The position numbers and the translations under genes were made by a program. A model generated the notes under the pieces. It did no database searches, was not told the DNA's origin, and worked only from the letters and a program-made list of their open reading frames with translations. Of a stretch of 64,000 nt of DNA, positions 1,127 to 48,419 are shown one piece after another; the stretch's first letter is position 1, and the number at the start of each line of letters is the position of its first letter. The DNA lies in NCBI GenBank assembly GCA_038496445.1, contig JALMLS010000015.1, positions 558,001 to 622,000 of the forward strand, read 5' to 3'. This stretch comes from Trichosphaerium sp. ATCC 40318. Lineage: Eukaryota > Protista > Tubulinea.

Positions 1127-1889
1127 GTTGCTCCAATGATGACACCCACACTAATGCTTCCATTACAGTCATCTGCGAAAACTAAAAGAGACAGACTAAA
1201 TCACAGTTAGAATACAAAGAGAATTGTTGTACATTGTTAAGTTGTCATGGCAGAATGGAAATTGTACCCTGTTGTTGATCGTTGTTGTTGAGTTTCAACA
1301 CATTCATGATTTGTCGCGTTTATGTTTTCCTCTCCAATGATACATGGACTCTCAATAGCTTTGATGACATTATCAGATGATGTATCAACTCCAGATATAT
1401 CAATGACGAATGAACTGTTTGGTTGTATCACTAGGCATCCTAGATAGCAGCAATTACACGTCAATAGTTAAAAAAAGCAGTAAAAATATTGCTTTAGCAT
1501 GTACAGTAAATAGGTATTTGAAGAGTACCTTTAACAGTCAATGTGGCACTTTCTTGATCACCAAAGACCAATACAACATCACCATTGTTTATAAAGTTAC
1601 CTTGGTGTGGCTATCTTTTTTTTCTGTATCCTAACCCTTTTTTTTTTTAGTCGCACAACCTGGACAAAGAATCTATTAATTTTGACGCTATGTTTCACTT
1701 TGTCCGATAACAGCAGGAACAAGACAGAATTCTGTGACGCTTATTTACGACGCGTCGGTGATGGTCAAGCAAGCTGCCTTGCAAAGTAAGGTGTATTAAA
1801 GGTGCGTTGAAACAAAACCATAAAACATTATCCTGTTTTTACCTGCTCCTGTTTACTATTACGTATCACGTGATTAATGTTTGATCACA
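1127..1889 (-). repeat. Inverted, internally deleted duplicate of the 29.08-32.39 kb locus (upstream segment fused to 3' exons/introns of surface-protein paralog D)
   Basis: 1127-1604 is the reverse complement of about 31902-32390, introns included. About 1645-1889 is the reverse complement of about 29082-29346. Confidence 0.9.
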
Positions 1890-2309: not shown

Positions 2310-3091
2310 TTAACAAGTGACATCTGCGCACTGTATGTACCAACCACGATCAGAGTACAGTTGAGTTCCAACACTACAGCATAGTTAATAAAGCGAAGCA
2401 TAAGTAGAATGGTACCTATAAAATGATCTGTATCCAGTTATGAACTCCGAGTTTGGACAATCAAAGTTACCAGATCCATAGAAACCAGGTATGAGGTTGT
2501 ACACATCTAAACGAAAGTTGAGTGAACAAAAAGATTCCAGCGCAACAACATACAATGGTAAGTCCTTGGTCCTGTCACACAAGGTGTGTTCGCAGTACTA
2601 CAACACTATGATTAACAATAGCAAACAAGCGAACATAAGCAGTACCCACAAGTGATTTGATACTGTCTATCATTCGCAGCAAGGTCCCAGTCATCTGCTT
2701 TAATATCTACAAAGAAAATAAACTTCCTTATGATAGAAGAGAATCTTACTTGTGGTTACGTATCCGTCAGGACACTCATGAACAAAACTAGCGCTCAATG
2801 GTGAAAGAAAGTTTGAATTAGGTCCATCAAAAACAACGCCATTGTCCTCACATCTCCATCTCCATAGACGCGTGCCGCCTACTAGGTAGCCAGTTTGAAG
2901 ACCGCTCATTCCACCTATTGGACAGTTTCGTGACCAATCAATGAAGGCATCAGTAACATCGCCACCAACTGAGGGATATGAGACACAGAACCTAAACAAA
3001 CTTGTTAACCACTCACTTTACTATACAGACAAGAAGAGTACACTATAGCTATGAATAACGTAAGGACTATGAAGCGAATGCTGTTTGCCAT
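2310..3091 (-). CDS. Secreted dermatopontin/hemagglutinin-amebocyte-aggregation-factor-like protein (5 exons)
   Basis: Signal peptide MANSIRFIVLTLFIAIV, then three repeats: CPIGGMSGLQT..TRLWRWRC, CPDGYVTTNIK..NDRQYQITC and CPNSEFITGYRS..SDRGWYIQC. These fit the dermatopontin repeat pattern CP..G..S..DRxWxxxC. Confidence 0.7.
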
Positions 3092-4609: not shown

Positions 4610-6404
4610 TCAACTATGAGAAACACAATGCAGTATAACTTGTACTAGATCACCAAACGGACTATCATCATATTGAAATATAGACGTCATATAAGAGTTT
4701 TGATTAACCTACAATACAACATGTCAAGTTAATACATCAACTGACGAAAGATACGTGACGTACTTGTGCAACACCTCTAATTGAAAAAGGAATGGAAGCA
4801 GGGTACGTTTCATTGAAAGCAAGCTTTCCTATTACTAAATATCAGCTTGGCAATAGGTATGGTTAACACGTGACCATTTTGGTAGACGCCAGCGAGAATG
4901 CTGCTGTATGGACCATTCACCATTGAATAAGTTGCAAATGGAGAGCCTGCACCTTTATACTGTACAGCACCTGGATAATTTGTACCAGTTCTATCGCTTG
5001 GGTATTTTGTTTGATATATCCTGATGAATGAAGTTATTGTAAGTTTCAGTGAAGTTTCGTTCGCTTACAATTTTCCTGATGAGGTGTAAGCGTTGTAGCT
5101 ATTAGTTCCATCACAAAGAACAAAAAAATTTCCTGTTTCTGGGTTTACAGCAACATGTGGGTTACTGCAAAGTTGTGGTTTTGGTGTACGCCTATAAAGG
5201 GTCTAAACGAGGGCAAATATTGAAGAAATAACGTGCCATTGTTCAACACCTTTTACATTAACTGATAAAATTTGTTCAAAATCAATAGCAACGATCAAGT
5301 TGTTTGATATTGGATTCCAAGCAACGGAGTAAGAATTGACCTGATCATTCGTTTTAGTCCATGAAACACGCTTATTTACCAAATCAAATCCGTGGAGAGT
5401 AAACTGTTCTCCTTGATATAGAACACCTGTGGGCGATAAATGAAATGACGAGAAAAAAACGAGAAAAAAATTATCAATACTGATTTCATACCAAAACAAG
5501 CTGTTTCCATGCATACTAAAGGATCCCATTCAGAACCTGAAAAAGTAGGTTTCGTCCACAAAGGAATCTCAAATGTATAAACGAGTGACATAGATGAAGT
5601 GTCAAAAGCAGAAAAGTTGCCGTCTATCAGCAAATAAATGTGTTCTCCGTTTGTAGATAGAGTAGGTCCAGCAGCAAAGTTAGTCTTTTGTTTAATGACT
5701 GTAGAACTAACTATGCTTCCTGAACTAGCTGAAAGCTTGTACATCTGAAGTTGATTACCGTGATACCTTAAAAAAAGTCAAACAATACACCAAAACACGT
5801 GATAAGAATCTCAACGTGACAATCATCGTGGCACATTCAAATGATTTCCTGTGTGGGTTTTTACCACGTGATTCAAATAACTTTCGGACATAAGACTGTT
5901 TGCTTAAAACATACCATACTGGCACGTATATCGTATCAGAAGAGTCGATAGCCATATATTTAATATCAGCAACTAAATTAAACGTGATTCTGTAATTCTG
6001 GCTTCCATCCACCTACGAAACGCTGTTAATACCATAAACACGCTTATATTGATACTGTGTACCCCATTATAGCTCGTAAGATAATTGACGTTGTTAGTAT
6101 CTTGAACCATCATTATAATGTTACCCTTAGAGTCCACAGCTGGTGGTATTAAAGACCCATTACCAACCTGAGATGTTGGTTAATTTAATGGTAAAACAAC
6201 GTGACATTTCGCCAAAAGTTTTTTTGTCCAAAAAAAACCTACACCAATGTCCCACTTGCCACAGGGTTTGAGTCCTTCAACGTAACGGAAGTTTGTTCTT
6301 GATGCGTCTGCGTATGGCGCGTTCCATTGATCAGATGTTGTGAGTGCGATTAACGAAGCGAAGAGTACTAAGTATTGAGCGAATGTTACAAAACGAAGTG
6401 TCAT
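4610..6404 (-). CDS. Secreted PQQ-like/BamB-type beta-propeller protein (multi-exon)
   Basis: Signal peptide, QWNAPYADASRTN N-terminal motif and repeated blades (PPAVDSKGNII, MAIDSSDTIYV, PTLSTNGEHIY). One GC-AG intron at 5192-5236. The 3' end is approximate. Confidence 0.65.
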
Positions 6405-8622: not shown

Positions 8623-9167
8623 TTATCTGAATTTGTTTGTGCAAACGTTCAATACAGCTTCATTAGTAACATCGCTTTTTCTGCCTGCTTGCATGCTTAC
8701 TGAGATACCCTAGAACAAACGGTTAACATTGATAAACAAAATACTTGCAGTACAACTTACTTGAAAGAGTGACTTTAAATACATTCTGGTGCATGTATAC
8801 AGCATTCTATGTTTGACTCCAGACTTCATAGGGCACCAATAGAGGAATACTGTCTTGGATCTTTTACCGTCTGAGCCAAGGTCATACTTGTATGAGAACA
8901 AGACATATCTAGGTTCATTTTCTGGTAGCTGTTCAACAAGTGTTTGCCAATCATCACCCTCTGCTCCCTTTGTTTCAATGACGACACGTGAATGATTATC
9001 AGTGAGCTTGTATACAATGTAAGGACTTCCTTTGCCCATCTTGAATCTATAAGGTCGGTAAGGAAGAAGACGAGGATTGAGTGATGAAGAAAGAAAAAAA
9101 AGACGCACTTTTCAAATGCTGGGAGGCAGTCTTCATCTAGTCGTGTTTGGACTTGTAGTACGCTCAT
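8623..9167 (-). CDS. ADF/cofilin family protein (3 exons)
   Basis: CLPAFEK|FKMGK..YIVYKL..LPENEPRYVLFSY..KTVFLYWCP..VKHRMLY is an ADF-H domain. Confidence 0.9.
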
Positions 9168-17149: not shown

Positions 17150-17704
17150 ATGAGTCTATTGGAGCTTCCTGTGGAGCTACAGCTTGATATGATGGACTCG
17201 AACGTTAATGCATACATTCTATGGCCTTTACTATCAAAACAAGCGGCATTATGCTCAAGGTTTGATAATTACTTGAACAAACGAGGTAAATGGCTGAGAT
17301 TTAGACGTGGCAAGAAAGTAGCACAAGTTTCCTATTTTAATGGTAAACAAGAAGGAGAAGGAAAATGTTTCTATCAAAGTGGTCAATTACGAAGTCAGTG
17401 TACATATGTTGGAGGAGTTAAACATGGTGAAGAAAAGCGGTGGTTTAGCAATGGACAACTTAATTGTCGTATATTCAATGTGCAAGGTCAGGGTCATGGA
17501 GAAGCAAAATTCTTTTGGTTGCACAATGGGCAATTAAAAAATCACAGTTTTTATGAAAAAGGTCTGAAACAGGGAGAAGATAAATGTTGGTTTGAAAACG
17601 GTCAACTAGAAAGCTTGTGTATTTATAACAAAGGCTATAAAAAAGGTAAACAGATGTATTGGAGCAAAAGTGGTGAACAAAGAAGTGTAATGTGGCTGTC
17701 TTAA
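17150..17704 (+). CDS. Intronless F-box-like + MORN_2 (YwqK-like) repeat protein
   Basis: MSLLELPVELQLDMM followed by 4-5 repeats such as NGKQEGEGKCFYQSGQL, GVKHGEEKRWFSNGQL and GLKQGEDKCWFENGQL. Confidence 0.8.
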   Translation: MSLLELPVELQLDMMDSNVNAYILWPLLSKQAALCSRFDNYLNKRGKWLRFRRGKKVAQVSYFNGKQEGEGKCFYQSGQLRSQCTYVGGVKHGEEKRWFSNGQLNCRIFNVQGQGHGEAKFFWLHNGQLKNHSFYEKGLKQGEDKCWFENGQLESLCIYNKGYKKGKQMYWSKSGEQRSVMWLS

Positions 17705-17978: not shown

Positions 17979-20499
17979 TCATCTCAAGGACCAAGGTAAT
18001 ACTGCTTTTCTGAAAGGAGGTAAAAAGAATGCAGCAACAAAGAAAAGGATGATCAACTAAAGGAAATAAGAAAGTGAAACATTTTAATAAGTTACCAATA
18101 CGAGTCCACCAACAGTCGCCCCAACAATGATAAGCAGATCACGTCTACTAATACCTCCATTGCAATTATTTGTATTTAACAGTGACAGACTAAATCATGG
18201 ATTACAAGTATACACATGGTAAAATGGAATGAGTACCCTATTGTTGAGTGTCGTAGTCGAGTTTCAACACATTCAGGAGTTGTCTCGTGATTTATCAGTT
18301 CAACGTTTTCGACTCCAGTGATACATAGACATGCAATGGCAATTATAATAGAATCAGAGGATGTATCAAGGCCAGATATATCAATGACGAATGAACTGTT
18401 TGGTTGTATCACTAGGCATCCTATGAAAGCGATTAAGGTTATCCAAGTTAAACCACAAAGAGTTTAACTAGAGTACCTTTTATCAATAAAGTGCTATTAT
18501 CATCTTTAATTACTAATACAACATCACCATTGTTTGTAAAGTCACCTTGAACAGTTGTAGGATTATCAATTATTATGAGTACATTAGGATTCACAACAAT
18601 GTTGCCATTGAACAAACATATATCCATTGTACTGTTACAATCAACGCAATTACCATCAACACACTCAATTGTTGGTAATGTTGGTGCTGCTATATGAAGG
18701 TGAGTTAATGAGGGCAGTTTATGTTTTTCCTTGACTTACAAGTAGGTGTTATGGTTGGTGCTTGTGTTGGTGCTGTTTAATGTTAGAAGACCGGTTGCTT
18801 AATCATTATAACAGACGTACGAAGGCAATTAAATAACATTGTTGAGCTATCCAACAAGAACGCGAACTGCTCTCCAGATATAGGAACAGCAAGTACCTAC
18901 AAACAGCGTATTACTAAACTGCTGATGTGTTTGAAGAAGAAGAAGAAAGAATGACTTACAGTAATAACACAATTATCACTGTCAAACAAACCCTTAACAC
19001 TGCTGAAACCAACCGAGCCACTTGGTGCTTCTATTGATGGACTCTAAAGAGTTTCATTAGTTCCTATTTATTGGGTTTTCTAGATGACGTACAAAGCTGT
19101 AAGGGTAATCCATAAAATCTACCAGAAAAGATTGTTTGACTGACAGAAAGATTGGGACAAAAGTGGATATATAATTGGGCAAAACGCCAACAGGATCGAA
19201 TATGTCTTCAGCGAAACTTGTTTCTGGTGTTGAAATATTCATTGTTGTACAATCGTGAGTAATGGAGTATAGCAGATATGTTCCAAATTGATCAAGAGAT
19301 TGTAACAATAGTGAATTGTCAAATTGGTTGTAAGTCAGACTTATTTCTTCCGGTGCTACACTGAGTGACAGAATACCAATATCAGACTGTTATTGGCTGT
19401 TAGTATAATCGTAGATAGAGGCGCAAAGAGTTATAGCTTACAATGTCTGTGTTAACTATTGCCTTGAATAAGATTTGAGTTAGATTGTCTGGGTTTTGAC
19501 TTGCAAATACAAAACAGCTTTCTGTGACAGCAAGTGCTGCTACCTTTGTTGGTATGTCAACTAGTGTTGTATAAAATTAGTTACAATCAGTACAAGTCCA
19601 ACATACTTGGAGGAACTACAGTTGTATTTGGGTGATCATACACAATAAATATATTAAATTGTAAGCCACTTATACAACTTACTACAACCGCCTCGTTATC
19701 TTGTTGAAAGTCTTTAGTCATGAATAGTTTCGATACAATATAACGTACACTCAAAGGCTGATATAGATTCACGTGGTACACGGAGCAATATTTTTGTCTT
19801 TGTTCGATCCGAAGTCAATGTCTTGAGTAACAATTAATGCGTTACTATAGATGTGTCCCGTACTTTGTTGTGTAGATGTGGTGTCAAATAAGCCATAAGC
19901 AAATCAAAAGTATCTTCATAAACGATTTGAAACTCGTTGTTGCCGGGTGATGTGTGCAAGTTGTTCGGTATTTTGATATCAATATTTGTGCCTCCCGGAA
20001 TGAATAATGGTTCAAAACTGCGCGTTCCGTTGTGCAACTCTAGAGAGCCAAAGAAGATTAGCACATTGAAAAATTTCAGAATTTGAAATTTGTCTGTATC
20101 GCACGTGCCATCTGGGGAAAGTAGAACAACAGATAACCCAAATCCACAAACGAACGTGGTACATAACTCTGTACAACCACAAATCAGAAAATAAAAGCAA
20201 CCTTAAACAAAAAAATGGAAATGGAAAAACGTACCCGCTCTAGCAGCGTAGACATAGTAAAGTTCGCCTGTTTCCATGCGTATCATTGCGATTTCTGGCG
20301 AACCGTCATTGGAAATCGTAGATTCTCCCATATTATCTACCACCGTCACGTTTGTAATATCAGTAGGTGGAATAGGGAGCGTAACTGTTCCAGCAACAGT
20401 AATAACTAAAAAAAACAAAATTATGAGATAGTACGCCTTTGCTGTATTACCTGGCATAAACGACAGCACAGCCACCACTGTGACGATTGAGGCTAACAT
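17979..20499 (-). CDS. Type I surface protein family, paralog A
   Basis: Signal peptide, AMIRMETGELYYVYA, GTRSFEPLFIP, short P/T stalk, Cys-rich membrane-proximal domain, TM, tail RKAVLPWSLR*. About 13 exons. Confidence 0.8.
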
Positions 20500-21144
20500 G
20501 TAGCGATACTAGCGCTGTTATAACAGCGTTGTAGATAATTAAATGAGACCTGTAAGGCTATCTTTACCGTACTACCTCGTAGTAATATTACGGTTTATGT
20601 ACTCATAAAAAACCACCACGCGTGTGATTTACCCGATGCAAATGAATTTTTTTTGAGGTAATTAAAGAGGTTTTGTAACAGACGCAAGTGCTAGAACTAG
20701 CAAGAATTGTCTGATTTGTGTGAAATTCACCATTTGGCACTTAAAGAAGAGTACTTGGCTCAATAGATGTTACTAACTGACAAATACAATGACAGTATCA
20801 CATGATTATCATACTGGTTTATCGGGAAACCCAAATATGTAGAACTTTGACATTTTTTCGACTTTTTTTTCGACATTTTAGTACACCGGTTTATCTTTCC
20901 GAAATAAAAGCGAAAGCACCTGATATAATTTATTATGTAACTAATATATCTGGAAAGTAAGGATCAATTTAGTTATTATTCTGTACCAACGTGTTCAGCT
21001 GTTATAACATTAATACGAACTTACATGCGCCCACTTTCGCTTCTTAGCTGGGCGATAGATACAAATGCTACAACTTACAGATCAATTTATTTTCGCGATA
21101 GTACATGCTTAGATAGTACACCCTTTTCTTTGTTGGAGCATATA

Positions 21145-23813
21145 TTAGTACCCTGATTCTTCTGTTGTTCTCAATGTCCAAGGTAGGATTGACTTTCTTA
21201 CAGAAGGAATAAAGAATACAGAAAAGAAGAAAACGACTACAACCTATAAGAAAAAAGTAAGAAAAAGAAAGACGGGCTTGTTTTACCAATGCGATTGCAC
21301 CAACAGTTACTCCAACAATAATACCTACATTAACACTACTACTACTATCACTACACTTTTCTGTGAGAATCAAAAGAGATAGACTAAATCATAGTTAGAA
21401 TACAAAGAGTCGGTGTTGTTTTAAGTCGTAGGTAGAATGGAAATTATACCCTGTCGTTGATCGTTGTTGTTGAGTTTCAACACATTCATGATTTGTCACG
21501 TTTATGTTTTCCTCTCCAATGATACATGGACTCTCGATAGCTTTGATGACAGTATCCGATGATGTATCAACTCCAGATATATCAATGACGAATGAACTGT
21601 TTGGTTGTATCACTAGGCATCCTACACAGAAATTACCCTGGAGCGGCAGTTATGTGACTTGTAGGACAAAGTCGTTCCCAGTTTATATGAAAATTACCTT
21701 CTACTGTCAACGTGGCACTTTCTTGATCGTCAAAGACCAATACAACATCACCATTGTTTGTAAAGTCGCCTTGAACAACGGTGGGATCACCAAGCGTTAA
21801 GATAACTTCAGGGTTCACAACAATGTTGTCATTAAACGAACACATATCCATTAAACTGGCACAATCAAGGCAAGTACTGTCAACACACTCAATTGTTGTA
21901 TTTACTAATGATACAGGCGCACTTGCTTAATACCAGTTTTAGTTCAGTTACTTTTGTAAAGATTGACGTACGTGCAGCTGTAGTAGGGGTTGCGGTTGGA
22001 GTCACAGGTGCTGATGTTGGAGTCACAGGCGCTAATGTTGGAGTCACAGGTGCTCTTGTAGGTGGTAGCGGCTTAGTCGCTAATAATGGCAGACGTTAAC
22101 ATTTGATAAAAACAATGTACAAGTTACGTATGCAGTCAAAAAGATGTGTTGATGTATCCAAAAAGAAGACATACTGCTCTCCAGAAGTTGGTACAGCAAG
22201 TACCTACAAACATATGAGATAGAGACCAAGTAAACAGTAAGAATTACTTACAGCAATAATGCAATTATCACTATCAAACACTCCTTTTGCTGTGATGAAG
22301 CCAGGAGAAGCGGCATTTACGCTTATCTTTGGATCCTACAACTCTGGTGAACAAGTTCTTGAGCACATTTGGTATAGACGTACCACACTTTCTGGATAAG
22401 AAGAAAGGTCCAATTGAAAATCTTGTGATACTTGATAGATCGAAACAAAGGAAGATACTTGATTGGGAGACACAGCAACAGTGTTGAAAATAACGTCATC
22501 TTGTCTAACATCTATTCGGCTCATGATCACTGAAGCACAATCATGAGTAATGGAGTACAAAAAAAGACCTCCAGAGGCATCAAGAGATTGAAGAAATATT
22601 GAATTGTTGTATTGGTTATACGTCAGAGTTACTTGAATGGGTTGTTCGTCTAGTGATAAAGAACCAATGTCAACCTATTGTTCAGATGTTAGTATGTTCA
22701 ATCCAAAAAGCCAAGTTGAGTTATATTGCATACAATGTCCGTGTTAACTATCGCCTTGAATAAGATTTGAGTTAGATCCTTTGGGTTTTGACTTGCAAAT
22801 ACAAAACATTCTTCTGTCACAGCAAGTGCTGCTACCTTTGTAGGTATTTCAACTAGTATTGTATTAATTAGGTTGCAACCTACGCAAGTCCAACATACTT
22901 GGAATGATTACAGTAGCTGTTGTGGGATCGTTGTATACAATGAATATATTGTACAAAAAGCCTGTTAGGCTTACTGTAATACCACTTACCACCAAGTCCT
23001 CGTTATCTTTTTGAATATCATTTTTAGATTTTTTCAGGAATAGCTATTTAATAATGGAACGTACACTCAAGAGTTGATATAGATGTAATTGCTTCTGTTA
23101 ATGTTTCACTCTTTGTTGGATTTAATGTAATCGTCTTAACAACTTGTGAGTAATACGGATATTGAGCTGTTTCATACTTTGTTGCTTAGATGTGGTGTCA
23201 AATAATCCACTTGTAAGTTATTACCCCTTTTGGAAACGACTTGAAACTCGCTGTTTCCTGGCGATGTATGTAAATTATTGCACAGTGTGAAAGTAACATC
23301 ATCGTCTGCAGCTCCAATGAATAGTGGCTCAAAACTCCGTGTTCCGTCGCGCAATTCTAAAGCACATAAGTGTATTTTAAACTTTTTTTTATACGTGCCT
23401 TTTGGCGAAACGACAACAACTGCAATACCAAAGTCGCTGATTAACGCGGTATCAACCTCTACAAAATTACACTCAGGGTTTAAAATAACAACAAACAGAT
23501 CCGGGTGAACTTGTAGAACAAGAGACAAATAAAAAGTTTAACTAAAACTGAACTTGGTACACGTACTCGCTTTGGTAGCATACACATAGTAAAGTTCTCC
23601 AGTTTCCATGCGTATAGTAGCAATATCTGGAGACCCATCATTAGAAATATCCTTTGACATTGTTATATTGACCGCGTCAATAAATGGGACGTCATTAATA
23701 GTACCACCGGCAATAGTACAAACTAAAAGGATTAAATTATGTATTCCTCCATTTCGCCGCGTACCTGGCATAAACAATACTACAATCACGAATGCGTTGA
23801 TTAATGATAGCAT
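21145..23813 (-). CDS. Type I surface protein family, paralog B
   Basis: Same exon series and motifs; stalk of PVTPTxA repeats; tail RKSILPWTLRTTEESGY*. Confidence 0.8.
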
Positions 23814-24269
23814 TGTAGTAAAAAAGAGCTTTTCACAAAGTGTTACTGAAGTAAAGTACAAAAACAGGTGCTAATGAACAAGAAGTTAAAAAAAACGTGT
23901 TTCCAAGCGGTTTAATACGTTGTAACCCAAAGACTTACTTAATTAAGAAAAAAGAGCATTCACGTGATTTAAAAAAATGTTCGTTCGCTTGCCTAAACCA
24001 CTCGACTGGTGTGATATTTTTTTGACGAGATATGCCAAACAAAGTAAAAGTAAAACTATTTTCTTATTGTAAGGGCAGCGCCCTCTAAGTTTATCACATT
24101 TTCTTATTTTCTGATTTTAAACCATTGAGCGTGACTCAGTCACGTGCTTTAGAAAATTACCCTTCCATTAACAGTAATTTAAGTTTGTGTTGCGTTTTTA
24201 ATTTCATCGTTACATGACGTTTTAAACAATTTTGGTAGCGCTCGCTTTTTTTCTGTACAATGTAGTTCA

Positions 24270-26808
24270 CTATGTAGACTGATGCTTGTTTCTCAAAGAC
24301 CAAGGTAATACCGCATTTCTGAAAGGAGGAATAAAGAATGCAGCAACAAAGAAAATGATGATCAACTAAAGGAACAAAATAAGAAAGAGAAACCATGAAA
24401 AAGAAAACAGGTTGATTTACCAATACGAGTCCACCAATTGTCGCTCCAATGACGATACCCAGAGTACTACTACTTCCACTACTGCAGTTATCTGTAAAAA
24501 CAAAAAGATCGAGGCTAAATTGCGGATTACAAGGTAGAACGTTAGAATTGAAAGTACCCTGTTGCTGATTGTTGTTGTTGAGTTTCAACACATTCATGAT
24601 TTGACACTTTAATGTTTGCAGCTCCAATGATACATGGACACTCAATAGCTTTGATGACAGTATCAGATGATGTATCAACTCCAGATATATCAATGACGAA
24701 TGAACTGTTTGGTTGTATCACTAGGCATCCTACACAGAAATTACCCTGGAGCAGTTATGTGACTTGTAGGACAAAGTCGTTCCCAGTTTATATGAAAATT
24801 ACCTTCTACTGTCAACGTGGCACTTTCTTGATCTTCAAAGACCAATATAACATCACCATAGTTTGTAAAGTTACCTTGAACAATGATAGGATCATCAATT
24901 GTTACAACTACTTGAGAGTTCACTTTAATATTGGCATTGAACGAACACATATTACTGCTGCAATCGAGGCATGTACTATCAACACACTCGATCGTTGTAT
25001 TTACTGGAGCTAAAACTGTACTTAGAAAACGTGTCTGATACTCCGGCCAATACTTACGTGTAATTGTGGTTGGTGCCAGAGGTGGTACTGTTGGTGGTAT
25101 CGATGCTGGTATAAATAGTATTAACAAATTATTCAGTTAAGGTAACTAACGTATGCAAGCGAACAGCTGTGATGTTGTATTTAATAGCAACACATACTGA
25201 GAACCAGATCCTGTTACAGTGAGTACCTTTTAAAAGATTAGCTAGTAAATCCTAAAAGTAACGATCAACTCACAACAATGACGCAATTGTCCCTATCGAA
25301 TACACTATGTATTGCTTGAAATCCAGGAGTTGCGTCAGGTGATATCGCTGTAGGACTCTAAAAGGATAAGAACCCGTTAATAACATGTAATTTCTTCGAA
25401 GGGCGTACATATCCAGGGGGATAAGTATCAAAGTGCAAGTCACCCGCCATTGCGGATATCTGGAAAATAACAACAAAAGAAGATACGCCACTCGGAAGAA
25501 CATCAACAGCGTTGAAAACAGTGTTTGTCAACACACTTTCTGGTGGAGAAATATCCAGTGTTGTACAATTGTGGTTGATAGAATAGCTCGTTAGTAATGT
25601 GTCTGATTCATCAAGCTCTTGAAACAATAGTGTATTGTTGTATTGATTGTACGTAAGACGTATTTCTGCTGGTGGTACACTGAGTGACAGAATACCAATA
25701 TCTTCCTGTTTTTGTACGTTAGCATTTTCAAAGCATATTTAACATTAAGTTGCGTACAATTTCTGCGTTAAGTATTGCCTTGAATAAGATTTGAGTTAGA
25801 TTGTCTGGGTTTTGACTTGCAAATACAAAACATTCTTCTGTCACTGCAAATGCTGTAACGTTTGTTGGTATTTCAACTAGTGTATTAATTAGGTTAACTT
25901 AAACAAAGCCAACTTACTTGGAGGAACAGTTACGTCAGAAGTATTTGGGTCGTTGTATTCAATAAATACATTGTAAAAAATAAGTGGCGGCGCTGTTCTT
26001 GTTGTGATACCACTCACCACCACGTCCTCATTAACTTTTTGAAGTAACGTTTAGTTTGACATAATTAGTCTAGATAGAATGAAGCGTACGCTCAATAGCC
26101 GATAGAGACCCAAGTGGCTCAGTTAGCAGGGATTTTCTTCTTGAAATGTCAATAGAAAGCGTCTGGAAGGGAAAGTGTTAATTGGACTGTGGTGCTTTTA
26201 ATAGTACTCCGTCACGTACTTTGTTTAAATTTGGTGTCAAATAGTCCACAAACATTTCACCAGCCCCGCTTTCATAAACAATTTGAAACTCGCTATCACT
26301 TGGCGCTATGTCGAAGTTGTTTGGTATTTTGAAATTGGAAACATCTGGAATGAATAGAGGCTCAAAACTGCGTGTTCCAGAGCGCAACTCTAAAATCCCA
26401 AAAAACCACGTTAGAATTTTCAGTGTTTACAATAATTTAGTCACGTGCCATCTCTCGACACTACAGTAATCGCGACTCCATTTTCATTAGAAACTAAAAA
26501 TGTAAATTAAACTCGACTTGTGTCGTTTTCTGAAGTTGATGTTCGTACATGCTTTAGACGCGTAGACATAGTACACTTCGCCTGTTTCCATGCGTATCGC
26601 CGAAACTGAAGGAGAGCCCACGTTTGAAATAGTAGGTGTTAGCGTCAGGTACGTTGTATCAAAAAATGGAGCTTCAATAACAACCCCTCCTGCTATTGTG
26701 GCAGCTACAAAAAAAGCAGTGTAAGAAAAACAGATTATTGGACAGCTGTGGTGTTTTACTTGGCATAGACAATAGCAAAATCGCCAATATGATGATTTCA
26801 GCCGACAT
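24270..26808 (-). CDS. Type I surface protein family, paralog C
   Basis: Same exon series and motifs; tail ends PWSLRNKHQST*. Confidence 0.8.
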
Positions 26809-27080
26809 TTGGCAAGATTGGCGCTTTTGTAGAGGTGTTTTTTGTGTGAATCCCTTTACGAATTCGTTATTACAAGGGTAATGGTAAACGAGTCCAAATT
26901 AGTCTGTGACAGTTTCAATTAACAAACGCTTTGTCACGTGATAAGCACAGCGAAACTCTTTAGCCGAAAGTGTCTTCACATACCGAACTAAAGTTTATTT
27001 TATTTATAGAAATACAGTAGCGCATCAACTAAACCACACAAATGGTTTTGGAAAATTGGAGATTGAAGCAAAAAAAAAGT

Positions 27081-29020
27081 TTATGGATTAAGTTGTAGCA
27101 TTTGGCTTGAGCTTCTGTAAGTTACTCTTGCTGCTTCACGGAGTACAGATCTTGATTTTTTTACTACGCCAGGTGTTGCATAACTCTAGGTGATAGAGTG
27201 AGAACCAGCAAGCTGAACGTCAAAGAAAAAAATAGAAACAAAAGAAGTCAATCGACTATGTACTTTACTTGATGGCGTGTAATACGTGCGATCCATCAAA
27301 ACCATAAGGTATGTAAAAAAATAGAAAACGAAGAACTATGATTTTTTGAAGAGCGTGTTAAGAGGAAAAAACCGACGCACCTCAAACTTCGTCGATACAT
27401 CTTTATCATCACAATTCATTTGTTTTTCCATATAGTCTTTAACAATATTCTTTGCCTCTTCGTCATAATCAAATTCAATATCAATAATACGTTTCAATAG
27501 AAAGAGGTTATCTCTTAGAGTCATAAACATAACTGTAGCAAGAGAAACAAAATCCTTTAACACATGTTTTTCAATAAATTTACCCAAGTTCGCATCAAAC
27601 TTAGGAAATGCAACCAGTTTACCAAGTCCTTTTCTTTCTGTCTTACCACCAACGTATCCACCTTGATCTATCCGTATAAGATAGTCTTTATTACCTAAAA
27701 ACAACAGACATAAGAAAAAGAAAAGAAAAAACAGAACGTTGACAAGCTTGATTGTTTTGACAAGTAAATCACGTGCCTCTGTTGTTTACAAGAAAATTGT
27801 CTTTGTGGGCGTCTCTTATCCCAAATGAATAAACAAACATTAGAGTAGCAGCCATTGACCTCAAGAAGGTCTTGTCTATACCATTGCCATAGCTTAGCTT
27901 ACTGTTATTAACAGCCTTTGCTTTTCGCCGTAAATAGTCATAAAAGTTCCCTGAATTATCGAGAAATTCAATAATACCCCAAGCGTCATTATGTGCAATA
28001 ATCTTAAAGCAACCAAGAGAATCAGACATACCTAATCTTTTTTTAGAGTCATATTAAGGATAAATCACGTGAATCTATTTAGAGAAAGATTGACGTGTTT
28101 AGTACCAATATCTCTAAGGATTTCTCTTACTGCATAATTAACTGTACTTAACGCTGCATCTGCTCTCAGGTCGTCTTTTTTAAATATAATCTTGTGAGAT
28201 GGTCTTCCAGCTGAGAAACATTCTAGTAAAAGCGGTCTCTTTCCAGAGTCAAAAAGCTTTAATGGAACAATCTAATACCAAGTCATTTTTTACAATGAAA
28301 ATAACGAAAAGTGGAGTACTCTACCTTCTGTAGTTTACACCCAGTTATCGGACATCGTATTTGCTTTCCTTGACAAAATTTTTTTGATGCCTGAAGGGAA
28401 TCTGACGATTTCTACCAGCAGGTTAGTCACAAACGAACTCAAAAGTTTTTCAAAATAATTTTTCAGCAAAAGTATTTTGATACAACGTACAGCGAGTTCA
28501 GAAAAGAAATTGAGCGTCTCATCTATTTGCGTCTCAACCCGTACATTTGTAAAATTATTTTTAATCCCAAGTTCACGTAATAAGTAGCTCAATACCCTAA
28601 ATCATTCGTAAAAACATAAAATAACCAAAAACAAAAGCTTTTGTCAAAAAAAAATGAACAAACTTGTTTTTTTTGTTGATTTAGGTTGTCAGTACCATCG
28701 CTGATTTTCTGTTAAACCACATGTGCGATCAAAACCCTCCACGTGACTCATTGGAAATTTCCCCTAACGAATTGTGTTTGTATGTGCCAAAATGTCAAAA
28801 AAACGGCCGTACCTCGACCGACTCGTTAGCGCTTGGCTGATAGGACAAATATCAGTATCGAACTAAACTACAGTGACTAAGAACACACCTTTTTTTCAGC
28901 ACCTCTTGAGTTTCGTGCTCTAGATAATGACCTAGCTTGAGATTTCGAATCTAAAGTACCATAACACCATTCTCCATGATAAGACGTTACAGTTGGTGTT
29001 TGACCCATAAAAATCGCCAT
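27081..29020 (-). CDS. Minimal, divergent PI3/PI4-kinase-like catalytic domain protein
   Basis: LFDSGKRPLLL, IIFKKDDLRAD, WGIIEFL, GIRDAHKDNFLV and IRIDQG occur in PI3K motif order. Both ends are approximate. Confidence 0.75.
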
Positions 29021-29797
29021 AGCTTTTGGGTCACGAACTAGCGAAGGTTCGAACACTTTAATAGAAAAATAAGGTGTCACGTGTGATCAAATATTAATCA
29101 CGTGATGCGTAATAGTAAACAGGAGCAGATAAAAAACGAGGCTAATGTTTTTTGGGTTTTTTTCAACGCACCTTTAATACACCTTACTTTGCAAGGCAGC
29201 TTGCTTGACCATCCACCGACGCGTCGTAAATAAGCGTCACAGAATTCTTTCTTGTTTCTGCTGTTATCGGACAATATTATTTTACACAAGTGAAACATAG
29301 CGTCAAAATTAATAGATGCTATGTGTCTAGGCTGTGCGACTAAAAAACACAGTTTAGAAACCGAAAAAAAACCAAAAAACGAAACAAAAAAAGAAAACTA
29401 CCAACCGACACATTGGTTGAAATAAAAACACGTGAAGTGTATCGTTAACGAAAACAATACAAGAAAAAAGATTATCATACCTCCATCGAACCATTTGTGT
29501 AAATAACTATCGCACCTTCGTGCTTTAGGTGAAGCCATGCTACCCAAGGGAAGGATACGGCGCGTGATAGAAGTACAAAAATATAATAATAATTATGTCG
29601 TAATTTTCGCCAACAATCAAAAAAAAGAAAAGTCAACAGACATTCGCGATATCACGTGTTTTGGAAAAAAAATCAATTACCAAGTGCGTACGTTAGTGTT
29701 AGCTTTAGTTTTCCGTTCTACACATGGATATTGCTCCAGCTATAACATTTGAAATTCTAATTGTATTTTTTTTTCCTAGTTACGCTAATATCGCCAC

Positions 29798-32554
29798 ATG
29801 TTAACAGTTGGAAGCCTGTTGGTGATTATATTATCTTGTTTGCCGCGTAAGGTATTCCAAATTTAATGGTTCTTATACTCGTTTTAGTTTCTACTTTAGC
29901 AGGCGGAGGCGAGCTCCTTGCTCCTTACACTAATACCAAAAATGTGACAGAAACAAACGATCTTAGCAATGAAGGAAATCCAGACATGGCTGCCATACGC
30001 GTGACAACAGGCGAACTATATTTCGCTTACGCTACCCAAGCATGTGCGCAATTGTAAATCACACTTCCATCTTTACCCGTAAAAAGCTAAGAATTGTTCT
30101 GTGAGACTAACTGCTTTGTTTCTTCCAAAACAAAAAAACAAAGGCAGTCATGTTTTGTTTTGAACAAGAGTGCTTTGATGACTTTATAGTAATTTAATTG
30201 CCTAGTAAGGTCTCTCGTTGAAATTGGTAGTACGATCGTTGTAGTTTCGCCAACCGGCACGTTTTATTAAAATTGTAATTACTTATTGTGTTCATCTAGA
30301 GTTGCAGACAGGAACACGCAGTTTTGAGCCACTATTCATTCCAAACGCTTTTAATGTTAAAATACCAAACAACTTGCACACATTGCCTGGTGATAGCGAG
30401 TTTCAAATTGTTTATGAAAATGGGGCTGACTTGTTTTTGGATTATTTAACTCCAAATCTAAACAATAGAGTACTTCCAGAATAGCTGAGTTTATGTAAAC
30501 TAACGGCCTTCGAGACAATATCTTTGGACATATCAAAGAGGAAACTGTTACTTGATAAACTTGATTCTCTCTCGGTCATTGAGTGTACGTTATACCCTAT
30601 CATTCTCCCAAGTCAAACTAAATGATTTTGATTAGATAATGATGACGTGGTGGTAACTGGTATAACAGAGCTCGCAACTGAAATCGTTATAATCACTGAA
30701 TACAAGGACCCAATGACACCTGATATGGTAGTTCCAGGTATGCTCTTTCAATACCATAGCTCAAACCACTAAACACAAATAGTTCCCATAGCATCAAATG
30801 TTTCAGCGTTAGCTATTGTAGAAGATTGCTTTATACTTGCGAGTAACAAACCAATGGATGCAGATGAAGTACTAATTAGAGCAGTTGTTGGCACAAATGT
30901 GGTACTGTTTGCGAGAACTAGCAGATAGTTAATACATCTTTTACATAGATTGATATCGACACTGTTACACTTGATACACTGGCAAAACAAATAATCCTTA
31001 CATACAACGAATTGAACAATACATTATTACTTCAAATTGTGGATGTGGATAGCATACTTTATCAATTCGCTATTACCACAGATTGTAGTACTATGGATGC
31101 AGCCAGTGGTGCATTCGTTGACGCAGATGGTTTATTTAGTGGTGTTGAGGTTTTTCCTAGTAACGAAGCTACATTCATTACACTGTTCCAATTAGGGAGT
31201 GTCAACTTTTTTCAAGTGGCACTATATCCTTTTACAGTGGTAAGGTCTTAACATGTTAAACCAAACTTTATTGAATATCTTTTTTTAGGTTAGTTTTGTA
31301 GAAGTTCCTGGAGCTGCTACTGCAGTAAGAAGCTTGAAAGGTGTTTTTGATAGTGACAATTGTGTTGTTAATGTATGCCATTCCTTTCTTTTTCTTCATC
31401 TCAAACACAGTTTTGAACCATTCAAGTCCCACAGAACCAAGACTCTTGGGTTTTTTTACAATCTAATGCTTTTTAGATGCTTGTTGTATCAGGCAATGGA
31501 GATCAGTTTGTTTTTTTTTTGACACCAACTACAGGCGCTCAACTTATTTTCATTTGCACCAGTGAGTATATAGTTTAGTTTACAATGAGACAGCTTTAAC
31601 ATTACTAGAAACTCAACCAGCGCCGCCAACAGCAGCACCAATGATACCAAGCACATTACCGCCAACACTTGCACCTTTGACATCACCGGTAACGGACGCA
31701 CCAACTACAGGTAACAACCATTCTAGTTCATACTTTTTATTGGTCATTTGAACTAAAGCTGTATCATTAGTAAATACAACAATTGAGTGTGTTGATAGTA
31801 CTTGCCTTGATTGTGCCAGTACAATGGATATGTGTTCGTTTAATGACAACATTGTTGTGAATCCCCAAGTAGTCGTAACAATTGATGATCCCACCGTTGT
31901 TCAAGGTAACTTTATAAACAATGGTGATGTTGTATTGGTCATTGACGATCAAGAAAGTACCACATTGACGGTTGAAGGTACTTTTCACAATACCTATGTA
32001 TATTTTACTGTTTATGCTAAAGCAATATTTTTACTGCTTTTTTTAACTATTGACGCATAATTGCTGCTGTGTAGGATGTCTAGTGATACAACCAAACAGT
32101 TCATTCGTCATTGATATATCTGGAGTTGATACATCGTCTGATACTGTCATCAAAGCTATCGAGAGTCCATGTATCATTGGAGAGGAAAACATAAACGTGA
32201 CAAATCATGAATGTGTTGAAACTCAACAACAACGATCAACAACAGGGTACAATTTCCATCTGCCCTGACAACTTAAAACAGTGTACAACAATTCCCTTTT
32301 GTATTCTAATCTATGATTTAGTCTGTCTCTTTTAATTTTCACAGACGACTGTAATGGGAGCATTAGTATGGGTGTCATCATTGGAGCAACTGTTGGCGGA
32401 CTGATATTGGTAAATCAACCTATTCCTGCTTTATTCTTATTATTATTTCCTTTAGTTGATCATCATTTTCTTTGTTGTTGTATTCTTTATCCCTCCTCTC
32501 AGAAAAGCAGTGTTGCCTTGGTCTTTACGAAAAGCACGCCAAAGAGAAACTTAA
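29798..32554 (+). CDS. Type I surface protein family, paralog D
   Basis: Spliced frame open in the exons checked: MLTVGSLLVIILSCLP, AAIRVTTGELYF, GTRSFEPLFIP, P/T stalk, Cys domain, TM, tail RKAVLPWSLRKARQRET*. Confidence 0.8.
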
Positions 32555-33027
32555 TACAAAAAAAGTCTATGGTCATCATTCTTCAGTCCACTTTAACGCA
32601 CCTGGACAGATTCATCACCAATTTTGCTTGTTTTATGTAACAAATCAACATGTTCAAACTAAACTTACAAGTATTTATCCGTGACATTGTTATTAGTACT
32701 TTATGAGGACGGGTTTATTATTGTGTGTTTTGGGTGTTTTTTTGCACATTCTTTCTTTACCTTCTTTTAGCTTCCCTACATGCACTGCAAACGCGGCTTT
32801 ATCAGGTAAAACCTCTTGAGAAATAAATAAAGTTCACGTGATTGTAACTATAAAACAACTTTCACATTTTGAACAACATAGTGGAGCACACTGGCGTGTT
32901 TTGCAATGTGAAGAAAGTTGTGACCTTCCTTATTGGACCATAGTAACAAGCAAGTAGTAAGTAGCTCTTCCATTCTAAGGGTACGCCAACAACTTTCCAT
33001 GATTCTAATAGTTGTTCCTAGATCGCA

Positions 33028-36000
33028 ATGTTGACAGTAAGAGTCTTGTTGGTGATTGTATTATCATATTTACTGCGTAAGGCCTTCTAAAATAATGACT
33101 GTTGTTCTTATTCTGTTTAGTTTGTACTTTTGCAGGCGGACCTCGGCTCAATGTGCCATTCACTAACACCAAAAACATGACAGACTATGTTGACCTTATT
33201 AACCGAGGAGCACCAGAAATGGCCGCCATTCGCTTAAAAACAGGGGAACTATATTTCGTTTATGCTTCTCAAGGAGGTGCGCAACTTTTCAGACAGCATT
33301 AATCAATACAACATTGCTTTTTCAACCAAAAAGGAAGTCTTAGAGCCAGATTATGTATGCAGTCCACTTTTAAAACAAAATTATTTTGATGTTGAAAATA
33401 GTTTTTTATGATTGACGCTTGATTAAATAGTAGCCATACATACTTTAAATAATATATAGAAATTATGAAACATTCACAAACAGTGATGTAGCGTACAATG
33501 ACTCTAAAAAATAGTTCAATTTTGTGCCTTTTTAAGCATTGTTTAGCTAAGTCATACTTATTGCACGCATTATCAATTATGTTTTCATCACTTTGAGTAG
33601 GTGTCAATGATCGCATTTAATAGCCTACAAGAATGTTATTGAAAAGTAAACGCACAATAAAGTGCCTCAAATGTGGGAGTTTGTTGAATGATATTTGATG
33701 AAACAAAAGGTTTACTATTCTACACTGATGTTATATGTGATGTTCTACACTATTCTTCATTTTAAAATGAGTATATGGCGTAGTGGTGCCACTATGATCA
33801 ATTGTAAAAATACACATGCCAATAGCAATTGCATCAAAAGTACTCACTTACATTTTTTTTTCCCCAAAGTTATCGGGCAATCAATTTTACATCTCAGGAA
33901 TTGCCTTCAATATACTCATATGTGTTGCAAGTGATGTATTTTAGCTGGCACTTTTTTGCGTTTTAAAAATGGATCAGTTTTCTACATCTGGAATTTTTCG
34001 TAAAACCAATATTAAAGGCTAGGGCCAAAACGGTCCAAACTGCGAATATGTAGAAATAGAAGTATATGAGCTGTTTATGTAGTTTAGAGAATATCGATGG
34101 CATCGCCTGGCATTATACCTTTTTTTTGCCTTATTATTTTAAACGGCGTTTTATGCTCGAAAACACATATTCCACGCATGGGTAACACTTATAAAGTATT
34201 GTTCTTTGATTTTAAAGAGCAATTAAATTTTTTAGCCACTAAACGCTGTAAAACCCTTATAACTTCAGTTCCTACGTATTTTGAACTATTAAAAGGCTGT
34301 GTTAATGCGCAGGCATCATGAAACCGTGTTCAAGGAGTTTATGTTGCTACTTTCCTTTTAAGGCAAAAAGTTCTTGCTTAAAAGTAAGTACTTGTTTCCG
34401 CGCTTACAACGTAATTTTATGCTCTCACACTCCACCACCTTGTTTAACAGCACCTTTTAAAGCCGATAAGAGCATGTGGAATGCTTACGTAATCTGGCTC
34501 TAGTAAACCCTCGAATCCAGTGTGGATAAGTATGTGTTAATCATATAAAATATGGGCGACTATCCCCCACAGTGGATCAAGGGTTCTGTCTCTGTTTTTT
34601 GTTTTAGGAGGTTGTAATATTTGCCTAGCAAAGTCTCTTGTGATGGAGGTTCAATTTGGCACTACGCTCGTTGTACTTTCACGAACTGGCACGTGTGATA
34701 TAAAATGTGTACATACTCATCGTTGCTATTATAGAGTTGCAGACAGGAACACGCAGTTTTGAGCCACTATTCATTCCAGACGCTTTTAATGTTAAGATAC
34801 CAAACAACTTGCACACTTCGCCTGGTGATAGCGAGTTTCAAATTGTTTATGAAAGCGGCGCTGATGTGGTTGTGGATTACCTAACTCCAGATCTAAACAA
34901 TAGAGTACTTCCAGAATAGCTGAGTTTATGTAAACTTACTGCCTTCAAGACAATATCTGTGGACATCTCAAAGAGGAAAGTGTTAACAAGTGAAAGACTT
35001 CAATCTCTTTCTGCCATTGAGTGTACGTTCCCTTTATCAAAACGCAACTCTGTCAAACAACAACACTTCACGTCAAAATTTAACAGATTTTCAATTAGAT
35101 AAGAATGACGTTGTGGTAAGTGGTATCACAGGATCCGCGCCAGATTATAATGTACACATCTTCTCTGAATATAATGATCCAATGAAACCTGACATGAGTG
35201 TTAAGGGTATGGCTTATTCTCTATAAGTATTAAACTAATGACCGTGTTTAGTAGCAATTGGATCGAGCGTTGCATCAGTAGCTGTCACAAAAGATGACTG
35301 CACAATATTCGCAAGTCAAACAATAAGGGATGAGGATGAAATTTTGATTAGCGCAGTTGTTGGCACAAATGTGGTACTATTGTACAACTAGATTGTGCTT
35401 ACTAACATTATTTATAGACTAGTCTAGGCACTGTTGTACTCGATGTAATAGCACACCAGATAATTCTTACATACAACGAATTGAACAATACATTATTGCT
35501 TCAAGTTTTGGATGCTCAAGGAAAACTGTCACAAACTGCTATTACTACCAATTGTACTTCTATGCAAATAGCTTCTGGTATGGATCTTACAGCAGATACC
35601 TTATTTAGTGGTGTTTCTGTGTCACCTAGTAACATAGCTTCTTTCGTTACGCTTTACAAAGTAAGAAATTCCGAACTATTTCAGCTCACTACATATCCTT
35701 TTTCTACGGTACGGCTGCTTCTACAGTACCATCGAATTCATTCAATAATACCTTTTTTAGGTCCCTTCAATTTACATTCCTGGGCGTGCCACTTCGCTAA
35801 GAGTGTTAAAAGCTGTTTATGATAGTGACAATTGTGTTATTAATGTGAGTAGTTTTTTGAGTTATTTATAACAACCTTCGTTCTTGGTTTGTTTTATGTT
35901 TCTAAGCGCTTGTAGATACTTCTTGAACCAGATAATGGCGATCAATTAGTTCTTTTTTTGGCGCCCTCTGTAGATGGTCATGATGTTTTCATTTGCACAA

Positions 36001-37031
36001 GTGAGTTTCATGTGATTCAAAATTCGTTGTTTTAGCCTTCAGCAATAAATAGTTTTAACCTATGCTAGAAACCGATCCAATACCACCAACATTGGCTCCA
36101 ACAAGTGCGCCAATGTCCCCAACAAGTGTGACAGTGTCGCCAACACGTGCTCCAGTACAACAAACCACTATTGCACCTTCAAAACTTCCTACAACGGAAG
36201 TACCAACTGCAGGTAAGAACAACAGCTTGGTTTTCGTATCTTTGCTATGCGCCAGGGATCTCGCACTGATAATTTATCATAGGAATTGCGCCGGTTTCGC
36301 CAGTAAATACAACGATTGATTGTTTTAACAGTACTTGTCTCACGTGCAACAGCTCTACAACGGACGTGTGTTCGTTCAATGACAACATTGTTGTGAATAC
36401 TGATGTTATCATAATAATTGATGATCCTATTACTGTTCAAGGCAACTTTACAAACAAAGGTAATGTTGTATTGGTAGTTAAGGATGACGACGATGCTGCA
36501 TTGAAAGTTGAAGGTACTTACTCCATAATTTTACTTGTATCACGTGTTAAAGATATTGTACGCTATTGACTTATATTTGTTGTCTAGGATGCCTAGTGAT
36601 ACTCCCGAACAGTTCATTTGTCATTGATATATCTAAAGTGGATACATCATACGATAGTATCGTCAAAGTTATTAAGAGTCGATGCATCATAGGAGCAGAA
36701 AATATAAAAGTGACAAATCATTACTGTGCTAAAACTAAACAACAACAATCCACAACAAGGTATGTACCTCACTAACTCTCTTCTTGAGTTTGTAACCTAT
36801 GATTTAGTATTTCTCTGTTAATTATCACAAAAGATTGTAAAGGAAGTGACAACAAAGGTATCATCATTGGCGCAATTGTTGGCGGACTCATATTGGTAAA
36901 TTGTTGCATCGATTTGTATGTTTTTTCTAATTGTTTTCTGACAGATTATGTTTGTTTTCCTGGCTATTATATTCCTTGTGCAACGTGTAAGAAAAGCGGC
37001 CGTGCCTTGTTTTGACAGAACAGCAAGCTAA
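33028..37031 (+). CDS. Type I surface protein family, paralog E (intron 2 expanded by a transposon)
   Basis: Same exon series. Intron 2 is 33277-34628 (1352 nt) versus 162 nt in paralog D, and the frame is maintained across it. Confidence 0.78.
33343..34500. mobile_element. Degenerate cut-and-paste DNA transposon, 25-bp TIRs, TA target duplication (IS5/PIF-Harbinger-like affinity tentative)
   Basis: Left end GAGCCAGATTATGTATGCAGTCCAC (33343-33367). Reverse complement of right end GAGCCAGATTACGTAAGCATTCCAC (34476-34500). 22/25 identical. TA flanks at 33341-33342 and 34501-34502. Confidence 0.85.
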
Positions 37032-47324: not shown

Positions 47325-48419
47325 TCAATATGATTCATCAGCAAAATCCAAGGCTCCACTATTTGTTGGAGATGAAGTAGGTTTACAAAAATCATCATAA
47401 ACGCAAACCAATGGTCTTAATTCATCACAACAATCAAAGTTATTATTTGACATGTCACAATTTATCAAGCTTGGTAATTTAAGAATCTCAAGTGGAATAC
47501 AACCATCAAACTGATTATCATTAACAGCCTATACATGCAAACACTAATATTAGCAAGTAAAGAAACCTTAAGAACTCCAAAATTCACAGAAAAGTTTTAC
47601 CACGTACCAATATCCTCAAAGATGTCATGTTTCCAATTGTACTGGGTATTGTGCTGTTGAGTAAGTTTTGGTACAGATTCAACCGTGAAAGAGCGGATAA
47701 GTTACCAATACTGTCGGGTAGGGAACCTAGTTTAGTACAGTATGGTAAGCACTTGAACATTGCACGTGTACTTACCAACCAAGTTGTTTTCAGAAAGATC
47801 CAACACTTGTAGCTTATTGAGTTGTCCAATGAATGATGGTACTTCACCTTGTATCTTCGATGATTGCAACGTAATCTCGACCAAATCAGTTGCATTAAAA
47901 GAAGAAGGTATAGAAGTGTAAAAGTCATTATGATCCATATAGATTTGTTTTAGTGCTCTTGGAGCGAATGCATTGTCAAGAGGGCCAGATAGTTGGTTGG
48001 ACGACAAGAAAAGTCCGCTGAGTTTGCTTAGAGAGCCAAAAGAACGTGGAATGCTTCCTGATAAGTAATTACCTTTAGAAACACGTTAAAACGTTATAAA
48101 ACACGTGACATTTGAAGGGAAAAAAGCGTTGTACAATACCACTTAGATCAAGCTTTTGAAGCTCTGTAAGGTCTCCAGTTGATTCTGGTATGTATCCTTC
48201 CATTTGCGCGTTTTGAAGCGAAATAGACACCACGTGACTATTTTCACAGCGTATACCTGTCCAAGTGCATGCCTTGCTAGTGTCGTTTTTATTCCAATCG
48301 CTAGGTAGTCTTTGTATTGATGTTATAAAATCCAGTAAAGCATTTATCTCAGTACTAGGAAGCGCATAAACGTCAAGAGTATAGGCGTATACAATGACAA
48401 TAAATAGTACAAGCCTCAT
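47325..48419 (-). CDS. Secreted plant-type LRR protein (LRRNT cap + LxxLxLxxNxLxGxIP repeats)
   Basis: Signal peptide, EINALLDF..W..ACTWTGIRC cap, NYLSGSIPRSFGSL and GSLPDSIGNL. No clear TM found. Confidence 0.85.

Follow-up and report, generated by a model that had tools for sequence, protein, structure and literature searches.

A five-gene cluster in Trichosphaerium sp. ATCC 40318 predicted to encode a family of type I membrane glycoproteins

Introduction

Mucin-stalked type I adhesins and sensors of protists and fungi combine a signal peptide, a globular head, a repeat stalk rich in proline, threonine and serine (P/T/S), a transmembrane (TM) helix and a short tail, and their genes form tandem arrays that evolve in concert. 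Protist genomes commonly contain lineage-specific surface-glycoprotein genes in tandem array, and a locus of this type is therefore not in itself surprising. In Dictyostelium, the tgr genes (TgrB1/TgrC1) likewise encode single-pass surface glycoproteins and are clustered, with duplication, gene conversion and a divergent junction in the locus (PMC12745789). The Tgr proteins consist of immunoglobulin (Ig)-like IPT/TIG and E-set domains (PMC12745789), and both their polymorphism and their signalling tails are documented.

Here, we describe five paralogous genes (A to E) at positions 17979-37031 of a 64,000-nucleotide (nt) stretch of Trichosphaerium sp. ATCC 40318 DNA (contig JALMLS010000015.1, positions 558,001 to 622,000, forward strand; the whole stretch is called the window below). 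An earlier reading of the letters and their open reading frames (ORFs), the sequence-only reading, had described a polymorphic surface-receptor cluster arranged divergently around a kinase-like gene. On our analysis, the five genes probably encode a lineage-specific ("orphan") family of type I membrane glycoproteins that serves surface adhesion or recognition. The proteins share the architecture of the mucin-stalked adhesins and differ from that class in having a head and an eight-cysteine module without similarity to described families. What appears to be new is this orphan ectodomain, together with the other domains without detectable relatives; the type of locus is ordinary.

Gene models and protein architecture

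The genes were located by tblastn, with exon pieces of gene B as queries on the window (E values from 1e-5 to 1e-44), which gave five co-linear paralogs: the minus strand carries A, B and C, and the plus strand D and E. The gene D model was built by hand from the sequence; A, B, C and E were modelled against D with a splice-aware dynamic programme, and their junctions were curated. Database and fold searches of A to E were run exon by exon, and joined translations were used for alignment, hydropathy and estimates of nonsynonymous (dN) and synonymous (dS) divergence (omega, dN/dS). Each spliced model has 15 exons and an intact ORF without internal stops (products of 598-639 amino acids [aa]), and the intron phases are identical across all five genes (1,1,1,0,1,1,0,0,0,1,1,1,2,0). 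The cluster of five paralogs with a common exon structure and two opposed arms is thereby borne out. Its boundaries are exact, 17979 being the final base of the gene A stop codon and 37031 that of the gene E stop codon.

Gene A (20499..17979, minus strand; 598 aa; spliced alignment with manual curation, ORF intact) has exons at 20499-20451, 20405-20235, 20168-20109, 20039-19864, 19821-19749, 19699-19607, 19560-19442, 19386-19093, 19043-18960, 18896-18821, 18772-18740, 18689-18477, 18420-18237, 18189-18096 and 18056-17979. The spliced model of gene B (23813..21145, minus strand; 631 aa) comprises 23813-23765, 23722-23567, 23458-23399, 23356-23178, 23134-23065, 23006-22899, 22852-22734, 22674-22384, 22335-22252, 22203-22128, 22079-21972, 21925-21698, 21621-21450, 21383-21287 and 21243-21145. 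For gene C (26808..24270, minus strand; 600 aa), the spliced exons are 26808-26760, 26704-26549, 26493-26449, 26389-26220, 26162-26090, 26034-25918, 25876-25758, 25705-25409, 25357-25274, 25226-25151, 25105-25058, 25009-24803, 24729-24558, 24514-24421 and 24365-24270. Gene D (29798..32554, plus strand; 618 aa; the hand-built model) is read from 29798-29846, 29888-30043, 30206-30256, 30300-30469, 30515-30584, 30636-30737, 30783-30901, 30949-31239, 31289-31372, 31477-31561, 31609-31710, 31759-31977, 32075-32246, 32322-32409 and 32456-32554. Gene E (33028..37031, plus strand; 639 aa; spliced model) is joined from 33028-33076, 33121-33276, 34629-34688, 34735-34904, 34950-35022, 35099-35206, 35252-35373, 35418-35708, 35761-35844, 35916-36000, 36069-36212, 36283-36513, 36588-36759, 36808-36895 and 36945-37031.

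Introns are short (39-162 nt) with donors of the GTACGT/GTAAGT type, and a CTAAC-like branch site often lies near the acceptor (e.g., upstream of 25705, 19386, 22674 and 35418). In each of the five genes, intron 3 is of the GC-AG type and has GCACGT as its donor (A, 20108-20040; B, 23398-23357; C, 26448-26390; D, 30257-30299; E, 34689-34734), which indicates that this intron type predates the duplications and was retained through them. Intron 2 of gene E (33277..34628, plus strand), at 1352 nt, is about ten times the usual length and unique in the window; no convincing coding stretch was found in it, and the rest of gene E is intact.

The proteins align end to end, and hydropathy peaks mark in each a single signal-like segment at the N-terminus (residues 1-24/28) and a single TM segment towards the C-terminus (at about 553-629). 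The hydrophobic signal peptide is encoded by exon 1 and the start of exon 2. It is followed by a beta-rich ectodomain of about 400 aa (exons 2-10), a P/T stalk (exon 11; 12-49 aa, 65-83% P/T/S/A) and a membrane-proximal module of about 150 aa (exons 12-14). Twelve cysteines are invariant in A to E, four of them in the ectodomain and eight in exons 12-14. Exon 4 carries strongly conserved motifs (GTRSFEPLFI, EFQIVY and DYLTP), and each protein has 6-11 N-X-S/T sequons. In the stalk of gene B, a 21-nt tandem repeat (21995..22054, minus strand; 2.9 copies, 92% matches) encodes 7-aa units; its counterpart in gene E lies at 36098-36156 (2.8 copies, 78%). The TM helix is divided between exons 14 and 15 (...GATVGGLIL / LIIIFFVVVFFIPP...) and presents a small-residue face (G-A-T-V-G-G). 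The cytosolic tail is basic and 10-17 aa long, with the pattern RKxxLPW: in A to D it reads R-K-A-V-L-P-W-S-L-R plus 0-7 residues, and the more diverged tail of E reads RKAAVPCFDRTAS. All five proteins thus have the signal, single TM segment, P/T repeat stalk and sequons of mucin-stalked type I membrane glycoproteins. Hydropathy, composition and alignment bear out the predicted signal peptide, P/T stalk of variable length, Cys-rich proximal domain, TM helix and short tail.

Divergence, gene conversion and selection

Within the arms, ectodomain identity is 56% (A-B), 53% (A-C), 52% (B-C) and 61% (D-E), and across the arms it is 42-44%. The identity clades coincide with the two arms, a pattern consistent with a single initial inverted duplication and later tandem ones. 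The Cys module is ordered otherwise, being most alike in B-D (92%), C-D (83%) and B-C (81%); ectodomain identity for B-D is 42%, and dS for that pair is 0.17 in the Cys module versus 1.11 in the ectodomain. Noncoding DNA is shared as well, and 73 of the 76 positions of intron 12 are identical between B and C. A tract of 171 nt with one mismatch (B 21728-21558, minus strand; C 24833-24666) runs from the last part of exon 12 through the whole of intron 12 into the first part of exon 13. Between the arms, D 32140-32240 (plus strand) matches B 21556-21456 exactly over 101 nt, in inverted orientation, within exon 13, an exon that is 98% identical in DNA and 100% identical in protein between B and D. 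Smaller patches are shared by A, B and C in exon 7 and intron 6, and by D and E in exon 4 and intron 4. Since the B-D contrast is accompanied by low dS and near-identical introns, we attribute it to gene conversion among B, C and D.

A further copy of this region, fragment F (1127..1604, minus strand; 478 nt), is 92% identical to D 31902-32390 and contains part of exon 12, intron 12, exon 13, intron 13 and most of exon 14. It is cut at both ends, stops inside the TM-coding part, has unrelated flanks and lies about 28 kb from the matching segment of D; it is a dead relic. Upstream of fragment F are beta-rich-looking open stretches at 2703-3017 and 5206-5777 (minus strand), of which the one stretch scanned (5379-5777) had no Pfam match.

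The proximal half is therefore kept alike largely by gene conversion, among B, C, D and the dead fragment F. The sequence-only reading had proposed variable distal and constant proximal parts, a description that is strongly true of B-D (42% versus 92%) and does not hold generally, since identities of ectodomain and Cys module are closer in D-E (61% and 66%) and A-B (56% and 67%). The variable-head, constant-stalk pattern is thus largely a product of mosaic gene conversion and not only of differential constraint.

In the ectodomain and the Cys module, dN is lower than dS. In 40-codon windows, omega ranges from 0.18 to 0.80 for D-E and from 0.18 to 0.75 for A-B, except in the last A-B window (TM helix and tail), where it is 1.06; among whole exons, only exon 3 (20 codons) reaches an omega of about 1, in some pairs. 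For the diversified recognition locus that had been proposed, windowed ectodomain omega (0.2-0.8) gave no backing. These values give no indication of diversifying selection, in what is a weak test, with dS saturated for most pairs and five paralogs from one genome. As far as the predicted coding sequences go, none of the five genes is broken, and selection on them is purifying to relaxed.

Searches for relatives and fold

Pfam scans (major exons of B; all five copies of exons 4, 8, 12 and 13) matched no family, in agreement with the earlier statement that the ectodomain holds no recognisable domain. TIG/IPT and Ig domains were absent from the same scans even at E values up to 10. The Dictyostelium tgr products differ in this respect, as they consist of IPT/TIG and E-set domains of which the scans of A to E show none. 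They differ also in the tail, which in A to E has only 10-17 aa, and in that polymorphism is documented for Tgr whereas a single genome was read here. Because no exon scanned has an IPT/TIG match, A to E are not members of the tgr family, in line with the sequence-only reading, which took them for a different family.

A HMMER search with a profile of exon 8 (five sequences, 97 positions) covered 1.84 billion representatives, which stand for about 15 billion proteins, and returned no genuine relative; the family's own proteins are also absent from that library. Its three matches (a diatom ADP-ribosyltransferase repeat protein, a BspA-type leucine-rich repeat [LRR] protein and an unnamed ENA protein) were artefacts, being sums of short matches on repetitive proteins. 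A word search with exon 8 was blank, by a method that is blind to full-length proteins when the query is of exon size. No match was confirmed when JGI metagenome contigs were pattern-scanned with exons 12 and 4 and viral contigs with exon 12, and profile searches of the PDB with exons 4, 8 and 12 gave nothing usable. No exon searched matched an enzyme family in Pfam or in PDB sequences.

AlphaFold models of single exons were all-beta and of low confidence (predicted local distance difference test [pLDDT] of 59 for exon 8, a beta meander, and 47 for exon 12). Foldseek matches of the exon-8 model were Sm-like beta meanders only, at E values above 0.1, and were rejected as meaningless. The ectodomain had been suggested to be a beta-propeller. 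Comparison of exon-block profiles with hhalign gave a best probability of 6.3%, and the four to eight related blades of a propeller were not seen. Without an internal repeat between exon-block profiles, and with a low-confidence meander as the fold of exon 8, that suggestion is left without support; absence of repeats in the sequence is compatible with a propeller fold all the same.

In four of the five paralogs, exon 12 faintly matched Bflower_3 (PF21786; best E value 0.0018, at most 15-20 bits against a gathering threshold of 34); exon 13 did not match it. The exon-12 profile also matched Tako8, a designed propeller, a match that was set aside as a sum of sub-threshold short repeats in which no single stretch passes. 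Taken together, the two faint matches suggest repeated beta-hairpin motifs in the predicted exon-12 product.

The gene between the arms

Between C and D there is a single gene model (27336..29540, minus strand; about 9 exons, a rough model with an uncertain 5' end), which lies on the strand of A to C and head-to-head with D. One of its exons (27772-28053; 94 aa) matches Pfam PI3_PI4_kinase (PF00454; E value 3.3e-4, 21.1 bits against a cut-off of 27.1) and carries 'GIRDAHKDNFLV', corresponding to the catalytic loop with DRH changed to DAH. In the PDB, this exon aligns with Vps34 structures over their catalytic-loop region (E value 0.003), where 'ySfGIRDAHKDNFLV' is paired with 'YLLGVGDRHLDNLLL'. 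Exon 28068-28271 carries 'IIFKKDDLRAD' and exon 27339-27785 carries 'IRIDQGG' (DFG changed to DQG); by eye, 'IIFKKDDLRAD' and 'IDQGG' stand at the positions of the lysine/DDLRQD and DFG motifs. In place of the catalytic motifs DRHxxN and DFG, the protein thus has D-A-H-K-D-N and D-Q-G, with the Asp, the Asn and the metal-binding Asp kept and the Arg and Phe replaced. The remaining exons gave no matches in exon-wise searches.

The resemblance to PI3K/PI4K (PF00454; nearest solved structures, class III Vps34) is therefore that of one exon to the catalytic loop, at a score below the Pfam cut-off. Unlike PI3K, the gene has no detected C2, helical or other accessory domain and is far shorter (about 450-490 aa in the rough model). 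A divergent, possibly inactive, PI3K/PI4K-like protein seems a fair label. The gene is, as had been stated, the only one between the arms, and the PI3K-like assignment is weaker than claimed. As this gene is oriented like A to C, the divergent junction is the one between it and D, which share an intergenic region of about 260-400 bp. No 8-mer is common to the upstream regions of the five paralogs, and a functional tie of the kinase-like gene to A to E would have adjacency as its sole basis.

Interpretation

We consider an orphan family of type I membrane glycoproteins with a role in surface adhesion or recognition the probable explanation of A to E. The N-terminal domain would bind an external ligand (substrate, prey, partner cell or matrix), held off the membrane by a stalk that is probably an O-glycosylated spacer and whose length may shift by gain or loss of 7-aa repeats. 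The eight-cysteine module and the small-residue TM face could bring the proteins together with one another or with a partner. Given a cytosolic part of only 10-17 residues (R-K-x-x-L-P-W) and this TM face, the proteins would be unable to signal alone; they may act as adhesins or relay a signal via a partner at the TM helix or tail. The history of the locus could be that a single inverted duplication put copies on either side of the kinase-like gene, that tandem duplication next gave the clades A/B/C and D/E, and that recurrent conversion events, some of them across the inverted arms, keep the 3' halves of B, C and D alike. The kinase-like gene would most simply be a bystander.

Several points weigh against this explanation. 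The protein family is known here from genomic sequence, with predicted splice models; the library-wide search for relatives (1.84 billion representatives) was made with exon 8; and the fold of the ectodomain is known from the low-confidence single-exon models (pLDDT 59 and 47).

Self/non-self or kin recognition, in which ectodomains under balancing or positive selection would exist as strain-polymorphic alleles whose matching decides on fusion or cooperation, as with tgrB1/tgrC1, would account for clustered surface proteins with ectodomains diverged to 42-61% identity and for the head-to-head junction in the cluster, and duplication with gene conversion is typical of recognition loci (PMC12745789). 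We think it improbable, as omega stays at 0.2-0.8 in all windows of the ectodomain and does not rise above 1 over any useful length of it, no IPT/TIG or Ig domain is present in any exon scanned, and the head-to-head pair consists of the kinase-like gene and D, not of two receptors. About as little credence is given to a receptor-kinase module, in which the tail-poor receptors would signal through the neighbouring PI3K/PI4K-like protein and the linkage would be kept for co-regulation. That the kinase-like gene is the sole gene inside the cluster and shares the divergent 260-400 bp region with D fits such a module, as does the lack of any signalling domain in the receptors themselves. The arrangement is, however, a single instance with no second locus in the metagenome and viral contig scans, no motif is common to the five upstream regions, and the kinase match is below threshold with DAH/DQG deviations, so that the protein could be inactive; inverted and tandem duplication, in any case, account for the position of the gene without any function.

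Membrane-anchored extracellular enzymes on a stalk, for example polysaccharide-degrading or wall-remodelling ones, are also unlikely, if slightly less so. Searches and fold models covered single exons; the ectodomain is beta-rich, the exon 4 motifs GTRSFEPLFI, EFQIVY and DYLTP could form an active site, and the beta-hairpin motifs of the proximal module are faintly like beta-flower and propeller repeats. Against this, no enzyme family was matched in Pfam or in PDB sequences by any exon searched. A bolder version of the recognition hypothesis, to which we attach little weight, would have the ectodomain of about 400 aa as a new fold or family in a rapidly diversifying recognition receptor, with a conversion-uniform proximal module that docks all variants on one signalling partner, possibly the PI3K/PI4K-like protein: a new system of self/non-self or prey recognition, in a protist lineage that is poorly sampled and probably marine. 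If true, it would be an independent example of unicellular eukaryotes building variable receptors, with gene conversion keeping the docking half constant. On present evidence, A to E are a clean example of an orphan surface-protein family from an unsampled lineage, useful for genome annotation and as a target for structure prediction.

Other features of the window

The window consists of nuclear DNA of a eukaryote, in which G+C is about 36% and genes are compact. Scans for Rfam families and tRNAs were empty, and the neighbours of the cluster are ordinary (cofilin/ADF, COG6, dioxygenases, a RING protein, F-box/LRR and MORN_2 proteins). The cofilin/ADF exon (8761-9045, minus strand; Pfam E value 1.9e-23) has amoebal actophorins and fission-yeast cofilin as its nearest solved relatives; no library protein among 5.8 billion shares three 5-residue words with it, which indicates that the source lineage is poorly represented in sequence databases. 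Just past the 3' end of gene A, a single-exon gene (17150-17704, plus strand) encodes MORN_2 (YwqK-like) repeats (E value 3.9e-12) behind an N-terminus that is F-box-like by eye. A putative surface protein unrelated to A to E is encoded at 47587-48419 (minus strand), with a signal peptide followed, by eye, by a plant-type LRR N-terminal cap and leucine-rich repeats. The one hint at a marine habitat comes from a single-exon LRR gene at 52391-53197 (minus strand), its N-terminus again F-box-like by eye, for which the best relatives (37% identity) are MMETSP transcripts and ORFs of marine metagenomes.

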